From contig NIVC01000663.1 of the NCBI GenBank assembly GCA_002269645.1, positions 1 to 64,000 of the forward strand: a DNA stretch of 64,000 nucleotides, read 5' to 3'. Positions 1,878-60,657 of this stretch are shown piece after piece; positions within the stretch are counted from its first letter, which is position 1, and every line of letters begins with the position of its first letter. A program made the translations under genes and the position numbers. Below the pieces are notes generated by a model. The model ran no database searches. It had not been told where the DNA came from and saw only the letters and a list, made by a program, of their open reading frames with translations. The DNA comes from Macrostomum lignano (taxonomy: Eukaryota).

Positions 1878-1950
1878 ATGACTGAATATTCTTTGAAGAT
1901 TTTGGCGGCAACTGTGGCTCTGCTGCTTGGCGTATTGGGTCTGAGACTTG
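1878..1950 (+). CDS. Cadherin exon 1, signal peptide MTEYSLKILAATVALLLGVLGLRL
   Basis: ATG 1878, basic residue then hydrophobic core, donor GTGAGT at 1951. Phase 1 matches the next exon. Confidence 0.8.
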
Positions 1951-2005
1951 GTGAGTTTAGTTAATTGAGTTTCCAATGTGCATGCTGTTTGGTCTCGATA
2001 AAATG

Positions 2006-2250
2006 GCAATGATGCGGTCCAGTGTTATCTAGTAGTTGCAATGATGCGGTCCAGTGTTATCTAGTAGTTGCAATGATGCGGTCCAGTGTTATCTAGTAGT
2101 TGCAATGATGCGGTCCAGTGTTATCTAGTAGTTGCAATGATGCGGTCCAGTACTATCTATGAGCTGCAATGATGCGGTCCAGTATTATCTAGGAGTTGCA
2201 ATGATGCGGTCCAGTGTTATATAGGAGTTCCAATAATGCGGTCCAGTATC
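2006..2250. repeat. 32-bp minisatellite GCAATGATGCGGTCCAGTGTTATCTAGTAGTT, about 8 copies (intron 1)
   Basis: Unit starts at 2006, 2038, 2070 and onward. Confidence 0.95.
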
Positions 2251-2322
2251 AAGGACGAATAACAGTCCTTAACATGACAGAATCTCACCTAATCTACTTT
2301 AAACCCGATCGGGCGCCCGCAG

Positions 2323-2696
2323 CCGCGGCAACCTGCATCCAGCAGACAGCCACGGTGGCTGAGAACACGCCAGTCGGCGCACTGATCGCTCCGTTCTCAA
2401 CCGCTCTGCCGGCAGGTTTCACGTCAAGCATCAGCTACCCTGACTCGGAAACCACTGAGCAGTACTCCTGCTACTTCTCCATCAACAGCACAGGTTTGCT
2501 CATGAATCGCATTGTAGACTTGGAGAAGCCGACCTCCTGCAAAGCTGACCGATCCAACATCACCGACATGCGGCTGGTGCAGCTGACGGTGCAGTGCAGC
2601 TCGACTGAGTCCGCCCAGGTCATTGTGCTGTTCTCGCCTGTTGACGAGTTCAAGCCCTACTTTATAAGCTCGATATATTCGTTCAACTTGTCGGAG
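2323..2696 (+). CDS. Cadherin exon 2 (EC1 and start of EC2)
   Basis: Acceptor CGCAG, TCIQQTATVAENTP...LTVQC...PVDEFKPYF, donor GTAAGA at 2697. Confidence 0.88.
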
Positions 2697-2827
2697 GTAA
2701 GATTTAAATAAGTTGGTAGTTGATTGCTAATTATCAGCTTTGAACTATAGCAATCAGCGATCCCCTCTTTGGGGAGCCAACAAAGAATGAAATAAAAATT
2801 CTTGAATAAACTACATGTAGCTTCTGA

Positions 2828-3050
2828 CCTGACATCTCAGCGATCCTCCCAATAAGCCTTGACATCTCAGCAATCCTCCCAATAAGCCTTGAAATCTCAG
2901 CAATCCTCCCAATAAGCCTTGACATCTCAGCAATCCTCCCAATAAGCCTTGACATCTCAGCAATCCTCCCAATAAGCCTTGACATCTCAGCAATTCCCTC
3001 CAATAAGCCTTGACATCTCAGCAATCCTCTCAATTAGTCTTGACATCTCA
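2828..3050. repeat. 30-bp minisatellite GACATCTCAGCAATCCTCCCAATAAGCCTT (intron 2)
   Basis: Tandem periodicity of 30. Confidence 0.95.
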
Positions 3051-3085
3051 TATTAGCTTTGAACTTTTCACATCTGGAATTCCAG

Positions 3086-3178
3086 GCTACCGCAGTGGAC
3101 TCAATAGTGGTCACGCTCAGAGGCCAAGTCGATGACAAAGACGTGCGAGAGGACAAAGACTTTAATTTCGCCATCAAG
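3086..3178 (+). CDS. Cadherin exon 3 (ATAVDSIVVTLRGQVDDKDVREDKDFNFAIK)
   Basis: TCCAG acceptor, GTGAGC donor, 93 nt, phase 0-0, DxD motif. Confidence 0.85.
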
Positions 3179-3604
3179 GTGAGCAACGCCTTTGATTAAC
3201 GTTCTAAATACTGATAATGTACGTTCTTGCAATTTGCTTATAAGAATCGTCAGAACAATCAATTGATCGAATCCTTAAAATTTCAGTCTACAGTCGTAAG
3301 TATAACTTAAAACTTTTAGCTGACGCCTGTTTAATTAGTAACATTTTTACTAACAAATTTATTACTAATCTTGGCTACAACAGATCTCGAAATAACTGTA
3401 GTTTAACTAAAACTTAGCTTGCGTATACATGGTGTACTTTTACTCTACTGTCATAATTTCGTGTTTATTTTATCGTACAATAACATGCTTGTACTGTTAG
3501 GACTGCTAGCTAATTTCCATTTCAAGGTGCTGGCGTAATTTTTTTTAAATTACTGTTCTACTCTGATAATGCGGTGTATTGATGTGCGAACTGCACCCGT
3601 TACT

Positions 3605-3695
3605 CCTCTGTCGGGCTGCCGCTACCTCACTCGCTTCTCTGTCGGGGTTGCCGCTACCCTCACTCGCTTCTCTGTCGGGGTTGCCGCTACCCTCA
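3605..3695. repeat. 33-bp short tandem repeat, about 2.5 copies (intron 3)
   Basis: CTCACTCGCTTCTCTGTCGGGGTTGCCGCTACC repeated. Confidence 0.8.
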
Positions 3696-3853
3696 ATCGG
3701 TCGTCCTTCTGTGAAAAAGTAGCAACGTTTCATTCTTACTGGTTGAAGTCTTTCAAAATTCAGTTTCCTAATTAACTAATGTAGATTAAATTCTGTGCCC
3801 CGCTGTAAAAATCAGAGAAGCTGACACTGTTAAAAAAATCCGCGCCTTCTCAG

Positions 3854-58100: not shown

Positions 58101-58249
58101 GGTGCATGCAAAGCACTGTATTTATTCACTTCTAAACTGAAATCATGGCCCTTCATTCACTCAAACTCTACCATGTGTAATTGCATAATTCAAATGAAAA
58201 ATTTCATTGCATGATTTCAAATTTCCTAACGCGCTCATGCTTCTCACAG

Positions 58250-58328
58250 GAATGACCTTATAATGATGATATCAGCGCTTGGCAGGCTCCAGGTTACAAG
58301 CCTGGACGATGAGGAACAATTGCTATAG
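58250..58328 (+). CDS. Candidate alternative last (or poison) exon A: (M)NDLIMMISALGRLQVTSLDDEEQLL*
   Basis: Strong acceptor CTTCTCACAG; from this acceptor only the phase-2 frame is open; TAG 58326-58328; possible donor GTAGGT at 58334. Confidence 0.45.
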
Positions 58329-58454
58329 ATTCAGTAGGTGAAGTAGCGACCCAATTTTTTAGCGTTTAGACAGGTTATTTGAGGGTTGAAATTTTTTATG
58401 ACTTCATTTTGCTCTGTTTCATAATTGGTCAGGATTTTTTTTTGCTTTTTTGTG

Positions 58455-58772
58455 GGTGAAGGAGTCGGTGGGTGAGCGAGTGGGTTGGGTGAAGGAGTGG
58501 GGTGGGTGAAGGAGTCGGTGAGTGAGCGAGTGGGTTGGGTGAAGGAGTGGGGTGGGTGAAGGAGTGGGGTGGGTGAAGGAGTGGGGTGGGTGAAGGAGTG
58601 GGGTGGGTGAAGGAGTGGGGTGGGTGAAGGTGTGGGGTGGGTGTCGGAGTGGGGTGGGTGAATGAGTGGGGTGGGTGAAGGTGTGGGGTGGGTGAATGAG
58701 TGGGGTGGGTGAAGGAATGGGGTGAGTGAAGGAGTGGGGTGGGTGAAGGAGTGGGGTTGGTGAAGGAGTGAA
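58455..58772. repeat. G-rich 17-bp repeat GAAGGAGTGGGGTGGGT
   Basis: Direct reading. Confidence 0.92.
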
Positions 58773-59269
58773 GTGGATTTCAGATTGGAGTTTGTGTTGG
58801 ATCGGGTGGCTGAAATAAAGGTTTCTAAATAGCAAGATGTTTGTCATTATACCTCTGTGATTACACTTGAACTCGTATACAATTTTGAGATTTTTTTATT
58901 TAATATGCTCGTATTGAATACGTTAAAATTGAATATTTTAGGACTGAAATCGCTTAAGCTTCATAAGATCAGTAAGCCAAACAAAGAGGTTAAGCAACTG
59001 GGCACAAACAAGTACATTTTGCACTAAATTGTACACGGTGTTTGCAGACGTATTAAAAAAAGCTTTTTCGGTGCCGTAGATTAATGACACACTTTTACTA
59101 ATAAACTTATATTTATAAAGGTCTGGCTGGTCGACGGTTGCACACAGAATTTATTTTGAGAGAAACTGACTTAAGAATTACTAAGGTTATTTATAACAAT
59201 TGCGTCACCATCAGTCGCGCTTAGGGGAGGTTTGTGCGAGTCTCACCCATGAGGGCCAGCCCCCAAGGC

Positions 59270-59462
59270 ACTGAGAGTGTACATGCCTGAGAGTGTACAT
59301 GCCTGATAGTGTACATGCCTGAGAGTGTACATGCCTGAGAGTGTACATGCCTGATAGTGTACATGCCTGAGAGTGTACATGCCTGAGAGTGTACATGCCT
59401 GAGAGTGTACATGCCTGAGAGTGTACATGCCTGAGAGTGTACATGCCAGAGAGTGTACATCC
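59270..59462. repeat. 16-bp minisatellite GAGAGTGTACATGCCT inside a dispersed element also seen at about 42335-42390
   Basis: Direct reading; flanks match the intron-22 copy. Confidence 0.9.
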
Positions 59463-59714
59463 TGACGATTTGGAAGTCAGAGCTGCTGTACACCCTGTGT
59501 GAGTCTGTGTACGAGTGTGGGATAAGGAGTCGGCGCAATGGGCAGAATTACCGTCAGCGTCAGCGCTGGTTGAGGGACGATTTGTGTACCATTCTGGTAT
59601 CTTGCATGATGCACACTTACTCGCATGCGGAAGTGGCGGCACCAGCGTCGCCCTTCTTCACACAGTTCTCTCGCCAATACGCTCGTACTCACCTGCATTC
59701 ACTCATTTCGAAAG

Positions 59715-59907
59715 CTCCGTGCGCAGGCGCACGAACTCGCCGCCTCAGTCCGCGGCCATCGGGGCTGGCGGCTCCGCGCTGCCGCCGCTGACGCGACAGC
59801 CGCCGAGGCCGCCGCGGCCGCCACCGTCGCCGCTGGTCCTGTCCAGTCAGATGTCGTCTGGCGGCGGCGGCGGCGGCGACGGCAATTCCTGGGATCTGTC
59901 AGGTTGA
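59715..59907 (+). CDS. Candidate alternative exon B, Pro/Gly-rich (SVRRRTNSPPQ...PPRPPRPPPSP...WDLSG*)
   Basis: CATTTCGAAAG acceptor in phase 2, GC-rich coding-like sequence. Either terminal (TGA 59905-59907) or spliced on from a weak GTCAGG donor at 59898. Confidence 0.45.
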
Positions 59908-60044
59908 GAACTGCGGATCTGTGCCCAGATCACGTGATATTTGTGTTGTGCATGCCATTGAGTAGCAGCCGGTTTTACTCGATTGATATTGCTCTTCTGC
60001 ACACTTGCGCTTTCCCGGCACCTCTTTCTTGCTTAGTATAAATT

Positions 60045-60423
60045 CGTGTACTACTGCAACTACTACCACCACCACTACTACTACTACTACTACTACTACT
60101 GCTACTACTACTGCTACTACTACTGCTACTACTACTACTACTACTACTAATACTACTACTACTACTACTACTACTACTACTACTACTAATACTACTACTA
60201 CTACTACTACTACTACTACTACTACTACTACTACTACTACTACTACTACTACTACTACTACTAATAATAATACTACTACTACTACTACTACTACTACTAC
60301 TACTACTACTACTACTAATACTACTACTACTACTACTACTACTACTACTACTACTACTACTACTACTACTACTACTACTACTACTACTACTACTACTACT
60401 ACTACTACTACTACTACTACTAA
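60045..60423. repeat. (CTA)n microsatellite
   Basis: Direct reading. Confidence 0.97.
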
Positions 60424-60476
60424 ATAATTATTATAAATACAAGAACGGTGATGACTTCTCGCTCTAAACATTTCAG

Positions 60477-60657
60477 AAATTCACATCTAAGCGAATCCAT
60501 CACCGATGCTGGCCCGTCCTTCCCGATGAGGCGCCCAGACTCCAGTTGCGCCAATCTGCTGGAGGCCGCCCTTGACAGTTATTTGCCTCACAATCACAAA
60601 GCAGCCGACGGCATGACAGATCTGTACGCTGACAACAGTTTAAGCACTGCTTTGTGA
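60477..60657 (+). CDS. Cadherin last exon C ending ...DNSLSTAL* (class I PDZ-binding motif)
   Basis: TTTCAG acceptor in phase 2, compatible with the 57600-57773 exon; TGA stop; AATAAA 83 nt downstream. Confidence 0.72.

Follow-up and report, generated by a model that had tools for sequence, protein, structure and literature searches.

A giant 32-repeat cadherin gene of Macrostomum lignano with a membrane-adjacent domain and spiralian orthologues

Introduction

The two described cadherins of the tip link are CDH23 (Cr-2), which makes up its upper part, and PCDH15, which makes up its lower part and is classed as Cr-3 with the microvillar cadherin Cad99C. Each extracellular cadherin (EC) module measures 4.5 nm; at the tip, Cr-2 proteins have an N-terminal N-x-P-P-x-F start with extra site-0 calcium motifs in EC1, and the EC1 of PCDH15/Cad99C carries a disulfide between strands A and F (PMC8691648). 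Near the membrane, PCDH15 is dimerised by its membrane-adjacent domain (MAD), MAD12, and MADs are predicted also in FAT and CELSR (bioRxiv 10.1101/460097), and having a MAD is therefore not enough to assign a cadherin to the tip-link class. A survey places CDH23 in deuterostomes only and reports PCDH15 missing from oyster (PMC10734073). Here we analyse a cadherin gene in 64,000 nucleotides of the flatworm Macrostomum lignano (contig NIVC01000663.1, positions 1 to 64,000, forward strand, assembly GCA_002269645.1); this whole stretch is referred to as the window. We consider it likely that the window holds one 39-exon gene for a MAD cadherin of ~3,940 aa with 32 ECs, a member of a conserved, unnamed protostome orthogroup that leans to PCDH15/Cad99C. 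What is new is the curated gene model and the recognition of this unnamed and widely distributed orthogroup; the type of architecture was already known.

Results

A single gene encodes a 32-repeat type I membrane protein

Of the stop-free fragments that contain cadherin motifs (DxNDNxP, LDRE, DxDxGxN), 20 are on the + strand of the window and one is on the - strand, and the long open stretches of the window are matched by Pfam PF00028. A gene model was constructed with a dynamic-programming exon chainer (codon log-odds trained on Pfam-confirmed stretches, retrained splice matrices and a bonus for EC-profile matches) and manual curation, independently of the splice model of an earlier sequence-only reading of this DNA. 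It has 39 exons on the + strand from 1878 to 60657, a span of 58.8 kb, with a coding sequence of 11,820 nt and a product of 3,939 aa; all 38 introns are GT..AG and phase-consistent, and the reading frame is unbroken. The product, a type I membrane protein, starts with a signal peptide and continues with 32 ECs, a MAD of ~105 aa, a single transmembrane (TM) helix (aa 3631-3653) and a 286-aa tail ending in -STAL. The two models, built separately, thus agree on one gene, on the signal peptide, on the number of repeats, on the TM helix and on the C-terminus.

A profile made from the protein's own repeats gives 32 consecutive matches, of which that to EC1 is weak and that to EC32 covers only the first two thirds of the repeat. 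The PF00028 count, proposed by the sequence-only reading as a check, returns 29 Cadherin stretches above the model's own significance level (1,060 bits). The 31 EC-EC linkers comprise 19 with canonical DxND(N), five with a partial motif and seven with none, so the protein contains what defines the cadherin superfamily, at least two consecutive ECs with Ca2+-binding linker motifs. No EGF or Laminin-G match is found in it by Pfam at E<=1, as had been claimed, and there is no room for such modules, since a single exon (54629-55218) runs without a break from the second MAD half through a stalk of 30 aa into the TM helix. At 4.5 nm per module the ectodomain would reach ~145-150 nm at most; the ~145 nm proposed earlier should be read as an upper bound, because seven linkers have no calcium motif.

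The mature N-terminus is AATCIQQTATVAEN. AlphaFold models EC1-2 as two beta-sandwich domains (pLDDT, the predicted local confidence, 69.7). Cys29, near the start of strand A, and Cys116, in strand F, occupy corresponding sequence positions in all four family members with a complete N-terminus, and the EC1 cysteines are located as in mouse PCDH15 and fly Cad99C.

The juxtamembrane domain is a MAD

The AlphaFold2 model of the MAD region (pLDDT 85.8) was compared with the PDB by Foldseek. Ranks 1-9 are all PCDH15 EC11-MAD12 (6c10, 6eet, 6bxz, 6c13/14) or CDH23 EC25-MAD28 (8tri), with E ~3e-15, TM-scores of 0.60-0.69 and ~217 aligned columns; later matches cover EC only. A profile of six giant family members matches PCDH15 6c14 over positions 1-238 (115 bits) and also CDH23 8tri in the PDB, and proteins alignable over EC32, MAD and TM helix were retrieved by an exhaustive HMMER search among 1.8 billion representatives. 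Structure prediction thus confirms the non-EC juxtamembrane domain of ~105 aa, which the sequence-only reading had called a MAD, as a true MAD (MAD33) with a predicted ferredoxin-like fold. With its class I PDZ-type end, the protein also bears out the resemblance to the tip-link class that was noted then. When a word-indexed database was searched with a MAD-only profile, most matches were short fragments without names, and vertebrate CDH23 was not among them.

Orthologues keep the repeat register across spiralians

In the exhaustive HMMER search the closest matches outside flatworms are Tubulanus XP_074649083 (3,989 aa, 'cadherin-23-like') and 'Fat 4-like' giants of 3.3-4.2 thousand aa from Mizuhopecten (XP_021355742), Argopecten (XP_069125193), Haliotis (XP_067672062), Patella (KAK6170346) and Lingula (XP_013401572/3); some orthologues are auto-named 'cadherin-related tumor suppressor-like'. 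The giants have 28-32 EC matches (28-29 in Patella, Mizuhopecten and Haliotis), no EGF or LamG, and a MAD directly before the TM helix. In the orthologues a gap of ~105-215 aa precedes the TM helix, and the C-termini are of the form T-x-[LF], with the PDZ-type ends ITHL, VTSF, LTRF, VTSL, DTLL and FTYL. Shorter relatives are an Octopus protein of 2,435 aa (21 EC) and an Owenia model of 1,161 aa (7 EC).

BLASTP aligns the window protein to that of Tubulanus in a single high-scoring segment pair (HSP) of 3,543 columns, 123-3585 against 65-3467, with 33.9% identity and a score of 1,579 bits; out-of-register alignments of the same pair reach ~25% identity and at most 430 bits. When single repeats are compared all against all, all 17 reciprocal-best EC pairs found with Tubulanus lie on one diagonal, as do 9 of 11 with Argopecten and 8 with Patella, where two more lie on a diagonal shifted by two repeats. 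Seven members in a global alignment are 29-34% identical to the window protein. The conservation extends into the cytoplasm, where the motif DEDGNPIIIVNS corresponds to IDEDGNPVIIVNS in Tubulanus, with DEDGNP(I/V)IIVNS common to both. From the register kept with Tubulanus, Argopecten and Patella, the level of identity and the cytoplasmic motif, it follows that the 32-repeat layout is ancestral at least to flatworms and nemerteans and close to the layout of molluscs and brachiopods. The earlier description of the protein as lineage-specific therefore has to be given up: the Tubulanus alignment speaks against it, and scallop, limpet, abalone and Lingula proteins are alike in this. Proteins with the same domain count do exist, as the sequence-only reading had allowed; they are predicted and uncharacterised, and none is a described orthologue.

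Position-specific profiles, one per EC, were made from seven orthologues and scanned against outgroups. The largest margins (+14 to +24 bits, at EC3-5 and EC31-32) come from arthropod proteins of 12-14 ECs (Ampulex KAG7190894, Timema CAD7404458, Darwinula CAG0897539), which match, in collinear order, EC3-4-5 and 28-29-31-32-MAD, with scattered positions in the middle of the array. These MAD cadherins are short relatives of the giant family. Their Drosophila counterpart may be Cad87A or Cad74A. In the Owenia fusiformis protein (CAH1795491, P0021, 1,161 aa), EC2-5 are joined straight to EC30-32 and the MAD, and it may be either a short isoform, a paralogue or a gene model that omits ~24 repeats. 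Neither Macrostomum cadherins nor the identity of the arthropod relatives turned up in literature searches. Two further homologue searches returned M. lignano sequences only: one with the largest exon, which was swamped by generic protocadherins and gave only M. lignano fragments, and one with EC2-5, which gave M. lignano proteins.

Placement among described families

The family lies in the MAD-bearing 'tip-link' class and leans, softly, towards PCDH15/Cad99C rather than CDH23, Fat or Dachsous. Besides the EC1 cysteines, the last-EC+MAD region scores 42-47 bits against PCDH15/Cad99C and 23.6 bits against a CDH23/CDH88C-like hemichordate protein, Glandiceps talaboti XP_077999586 (P0031). PCDH15/Cad99C orthologues of Patiria, Glandiceps, Tenebrio and Tigriopus align in register at EC2/3/4/6/7, each species having three such positions among the first seven, for which a binomial estimate (1/32 per position) gives ~1e-3 per protein; their EC10 maps to EC31 and MAD to MAD, and all margins are small. 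In the PDB, PCDH15 chains that cover EC4-7, EC5-7 or EC6-7, and another of 790 aa, match EC3-7 of the window protein in register.

The same in-register EC2-7, the match of EC10 to EC31, the homology to EC11-MAD12 and the PCDH15-like EC1 cysteines could also mark a true PCDH15/Cad99C orthologue, in which ~21 ECs inserted after EC7 and before EC8 have raised the repeat number from 11 to 32, and the reported absence of PCDH15 from oyster can be counted on that side. We think this unlikely. M. lignano has another giant, PAA75596.1 (P0176; 3,999 aa, 32 EC matches and a MAD), which is 24% identical to the window protein and shows no repeat register with it. In a neighbour-joining tree of the last-EC+MAD region (243 columns), arthropod Cad99C/PCDH15 form a group with PAA75596 and Lingula XP_013411494 (91% bootstrap), and the window protein lies outside this group. 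Because it is excluded, the window gene is probably not the Cad99C orthologue itself and would represent a separate family of the same broad class; PAA75596, which is closer to Cad99C than the window protein is, is a candidate for its partner or for the true PCDH15 orthologue. Arthropods, moreover, own both Cad99C and the separate 12-14-EC protein, and it is the latter that matches the window family much better, by the margins given above.

About equally unlikely is that the gene is a flatworm orthologue of cadherin-23 with five extra ECs, which would agree with the Cr-2 assignment of the sequence-only reading. The Tubulanus orthologue is auto-named accordingly, the MAD, TM helix and class I PDZ end reproduce the CDH23 layout, EC25-MAD28 is among the top structural matches, and the family EC1-2 profile aligns to CDH23 EC1-2 chains in one in-register stretch at 64-74 bits. 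These scores, however, are no higher than those of unrelated two-EC chains, and across the PDB the EC1-2 profile does not separate Cr-2 from Cr-3. EC1 begins with a cysteine-bearing strand and does not have the Cr-2 N-terminus, in which it differs from mouse CDH23, CDH88C and P0031. The last of these (4,051 aa, 'cadherin-23-like') has 32 EC matches and a TM helix near the same residue as the window protein, and its N-terminus and MAD closely resemble echinoderm CDH88C (PMC10734073 supplement). Even so, no repeat register is found with it (5 scattered pairs) or with oyster CDH88C from the same supplement, which BLASTP aligns in out-of-register HSPs of 25-27% identity; vertebrate CDH23, compared as PDB fragments only, aligns out of order (EC1-3 to EC11-12, EC13-15 to EC6-7). 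The last-EC+MAD scores and the restriction of CDH23 to deuterostomes in the survey point the same way, and the Cr-2 label is not supported.

Already disfavoured, and in our view very improbable, is a Fat, Fat-like or Dachsous planar-polarity cadherin that has lost EGF/LamG: the auto-names 'protocadherin Fat 4-like' and 'cadherin-related tumor suppressor-like', a count of 32 ECs near Fat's 34, the MADs predicted in FAT cadherins (bioRxiv 10.1101/460097) and the matches of Pfam Cadherin_FAT4_N to several repeats would suit it, but that model is a generic EC-like one that hits eight internal repeats, no EGF/LamG is detected and the MAD and TM helix share one exon, the top sequence and structure matches of the MAD are PCDH15 and CDH23, P0041 and P0022 (presumed Fat-like by size and EC count only) show neither EC register nor a match to the MAD profile, and the PDB chains FAT4 EC1-4 and DCHS1 EC1-4 align best to EC13-15 and not to the N-terminus (the DCHS1 EC1-3/4 chains, on which the Dachsous comparison is based, to aa 1400-1652).

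Public models and a paralogous locus

Four M. lignano proteins in UniProt/GenBank (P0018, P0019, P0161, P0164) contain blocks 99-100% identical to the window protein. P0161 (99% identity, ungapped) reproduces the junctions 4102/5400, 5502/7275 and 7393/9710, and P0164 reproduces 17038/17122 and 17206/33098, the latter across the ~16-kb satellite intron, which makes five splice junctions reproduced by these two. P0019 supports the junction 55218/57600 without 57082-57153, and P0018 joins the last two exons. The public models of the locus are short fragments of 155-932 aa, and no full-length model of the gene was found in the collections searched. In P0018, P0020, P0164 and P0002, which are models of the window gene and of a paralogue, stretches translated out of frame separate blocks of 100% identity, a sign of indel errors in either the older assembly or its protein models; the fragments are therefore no argument for separate genes.

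The paralogue lies at L001 (NIVC01002323.1, 166564-183778, Mlig_3_7 assembly), which is collinear with residues 188-2357 of the window protein at 45-72% identity. It is a second M. lignano gene of the same family, diverged from the first. The same coding span takes 17 kb there against 44 kb at the window locus (~40% of the length). The gene is cut off by the end of the contig, and its sole annotation is a 'hypothetical protein' of 790 aa (P0001).

That the splice model has fused neighbouring cadherin genes, or that the locus is a pseudogene, also seems very improbable: the public models are fragments and our model rests on genomic prediction, but the frame-shifted stretches between perfect blocks point to assembly or model errors and not to separate genes, the frame stays open through 38 phase-consistent GT..AG introns, full-length collinear orthologues exist in six other species alongside the collinear paralogous locus, and there is one signal peptide and one TM segment.

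Exon structure

All exons are on the + strand. Exon 1 (1878-1950) contains the start codon and the signal peptide MTEYSLKILAATVALLLGVLGLRL and ends in phase 1 at a GTGAGT donor compatible with the acceptor at 2323; curation set this exon, its phase-1 partner acceptor and the stop codon after STAL. Exon 2 (2323-2696) encodes EC1 and the start of EC2, including Cys29, 74, 97 and 116 and a non-canonical EC1-EC2 linker, VDEFKP. Exons 3-10 (3086-3178, 3854-4102, 5400-5502, 7275-7393, 9710-9886, 11173-11301, 14211-14372, 15695-16039) run from EC2 to the start of EC6, and exons 11-12 (16953-17038, 17122-17206) cover the middle of EC6; the junction between these two is one of those reproduced by P0164. 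Intron 12 (17207-33097, 15,891 nt) is filled with a 21-bp satellite, beyond which exons 13-17 (33098-33550, 34216-34719, 35632-35746, 36554-36994, 37259-37500) extend from the end of EC6 to the start of EC12, collinear with L001. The largest exon, 18 (38701-40380; 1,680 nt), encodes EC12-EC17. It is followed by the EC17-EC29 block, made up of exons 19-25 (40659-40913, 41404-41544, 41884-42243, 42563-43112, 44253-44368, 44449-44667, 44915-45013) and 26-31 (45400-45519, 46114-46907, 47052-47454, 48921-49178, 49762-49884, 50915-51431). Curation added the small EC-coding exons 5400-5502, 41404-41544 and 44253-44368.

Within EC29, exon 32 (51792-51806) is a 15-nt micro-exon (ENVTV) found by the exon chainer, the nucleotides of which appear out of frame in P0020 (QPDETSQLAPANVSV). 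Exon 33 (52174-53069) encodes EC29-EC31 and the start of EC32, and exon 34 (53786-54136) the remainder of EC32 and the first half of the MAD, which occupies aa 3495-3600 (53972-54781 in the window). Exon 35 (54629-55218), read directly, adds the second MAD half and the stalk, then the TM helix (54872-54940) and the first part of the cytoplasmic tail. Exon 36 (57082-57153) is uncertain: it is phase-neutral with a weak coding score, P0019 omits its 72 nt (24 aa), and it is kept as a possible cassette. Exon 37 (57600-57773) carries the conserved cytoplasmic motif (57601-57636). Exon 38 (59727-59897) is proline-/glycine-rich, with an alternative acceptor at 59634, a weak donor (GTCAGG) and a partial P0018 match. 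Exon 39 (60492-60657) holds the end of the tail, with the class I PDZ-binding-type STAL (60643-60654) and TGA (60655-60657). The last intron has a poor donor, the one just named, and a poor acceptor (CTAAG), so the support for -STAL comes from the P0018 junction and from the PDZ-type ends that the orthologues conserve.

Several alternatives were dropped in the course of curation. Acceptor 38647 was replaced by 38701, which completes EC12; the former would add 18 non-EC residues. An 18-nt micro-exon at 34873-34890 was removed, as no orthologue has the extra residues. Chains of 2-nt 'exons' in the satellite at 6042-6724 (under a low intron penalty) and an extension beyond the STAL stop through weak sites at 62-64 kb were artefacts of the exon chainer. 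The 144-nt intron 46908-47051, mostly (CAGT)n, is a multiple of three and stop-free, and its retention would put ~48 extra residues (SQSV repeats) into EC25; splicing it out gives a full-length EC25 (102 bits).

Repeats and flanking features

Tandem-repeat arrays are present in 32 of the 38 introns and often occupy most of the intron; the introns are enlarged by minisatellites. One array, detected with Tandem Repeats Finder (TRF), is the 21-bp satellite of intron 12, with ~748 copies over 15.8 kb (17242-33068), and it is the cause of the extreme GC skew (+0.8) of 16-32 kb. A 12-bp repeat, (CTCCATCCTCAT)n, lies upstream of the gene at 371-1162, (TAC)n at 60049-60422 in the last intron and (ACT)n downstream at 62911-63554; these three give rise to long spurious open reading frames (poly-Y, poly-V, poly-S). 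Downstream of the gene on the - strand is a 204-aa open reading frame (62114-62728) with a non-repetitive C-terminal half and no Pfam match, which may be an exon of a convergent neighbouring gene.

Discussion

Several observations weigh against the placement and the model favoured here. The profile margins are small, EC7 and EC28 draw generic ECs, and the in-register PCDH15 matches in the PDB all end at EC7 and may be partly an artefact; with EC7 as a generic attractor, the PCDH15 register over EC3-7 is weak evidence. The tree of the last-EC+MAD region does not recover the family as a clade and leaves its deep nodes unresolved. The search with the EC1-2 AlphaFold model in Foldseek does not discriminate between families. 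On the MAD, a single-sequence PDB search with EC32+MAD did not detect the domain, for which a profile and structure prediction were required, and Pfam PF23206 (PCDH15_12th) reaches 16.3 bits on the window protein against a cut-off of 27 (E 0.01); it passes the cut-off in the orthologues P0021 (38.2) and P0023 (44.4 and 36.4). At the 3' end of the gene, the cassette exon 57082-57153, the exon 38 acceptor and the last intron are weakly supported. The functional statements, finally, are all made by analogy with PCDH15, CDH23 and CDHR2.

Beyond the gene structure, domains, MAD fold and orthology demonstrated above, a role as an extracellular link can be proposed on those analogies. The ectodomain would form a filament stiffened by Ca2+, in which the seven linkers without DxNDN may bend. 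The MAD could promote parallel cis-dimers at the membrane, as does MAD12 of PCDH15, and the EC1-2 tip could form a trans bond, either homophilic or with another giant cadherin. The tail, with its acidic DEDGNPIIIVNS motif and -STAL, may be anchored via PDZ scaffolds to actin, and the outcome would be a link between microvilli, cilia or cells. In planarians, a gene annotated cdh23 is expressed, with myo7a, in photoreceptors and in pou4-2-dependent ciliated mechanosensory stripes (PMC12626421). If that gene is an orthologue of the window gene, this expression would fit the inter-microvillar or ciliary link proposed by the sequence-only reading.

A wider proposal, which we offer as speculation and rate as rather unlikely when taken whole, is a protostome-wide cadherin family, unnamed in the literature within reach, with fixed EC1-7 and EC28-32+MAD modules and from ~0 to 20 repeats between them, whose M. 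lignano member pairs with PAA75596 to form a heterophilic, tip-link-like filament several hundred nm long in sensory or adhesive cells. The known repeat numbers run from 7 ECs in the annelid model through 12-14 in arthropods and 21 in octopus to 32 in flatworm and nemertean. If the proposal were true, the two-cadherin principle of the tip link would extend to protostomes, in a form much longer than that of vertebrates.

The preferred reading, a MAD cadherin of a conserved orthogroup leaning to PCDH15/Cad99C, has consequences of its own. The spiralian giants auto-named 'Fat 4-like' or 'cadherin-23-like' make up one orthogroup with a MAD and a PDZ-type tail, which is not Fat and apparently not CDH23, and this bears on the age of tip-link-type cadherins (MAD plus PDZ tail) outside deuterostomes. 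The family provides a natural series for the evolution of EC number, and hence of filament length, between fixed end modules. A curated complete model now exists for a gene held publicly only as frame-shifted fragments, and M. lignano is amenable to RNA interference and in situ hybridisation, which makes function testable.

Compared with known systems, the protein leans to PCDH15/Cad99C: in both sequence and structure, its last EC, MAD and TM helix are homologous to theirs, and it shares with them EC1 cysteines where strand A begins and within strand F, a weak EC2-7 register and a class I PDZ-type C-terminus. PCDH15 has 11 ECs and MAD12 where the window protein has 32 ECs, and apart from the PDZ end the cytoplasmic domains are unrelated. 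With CDH23 it has in common a giant ectodomain, a MAD near the membrane and a PDZ-binding end, and EC25-MAD28 is a top structural match, but CDH23 has 27 ECs, and the window protein has neither the Cr-2 N-terminus nor repeat collinearity with it. Fat, Fat-like and Dachsous cadherins are likewise type I membrane proteins with a very long EC array (27-34), and FAT also has a predicted MAD; in Fat and Fat-like proteins, however, EGF/LamG modules stand between the EC array and the TM helix, whereas in the window protein these are missing and the MAD adjoins the helix, and Dachsous has 27 ECs instead of 32. The arthropod 12-14-EC MAD cadherins have ~19 repeats fewer. The closest proteins of all, the spiralian giants, differ in their longer tails, which contain an additional motif, E-[ST]-Q-E-x-x-M-D; no such motif is evident in the M. 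lignano protein.

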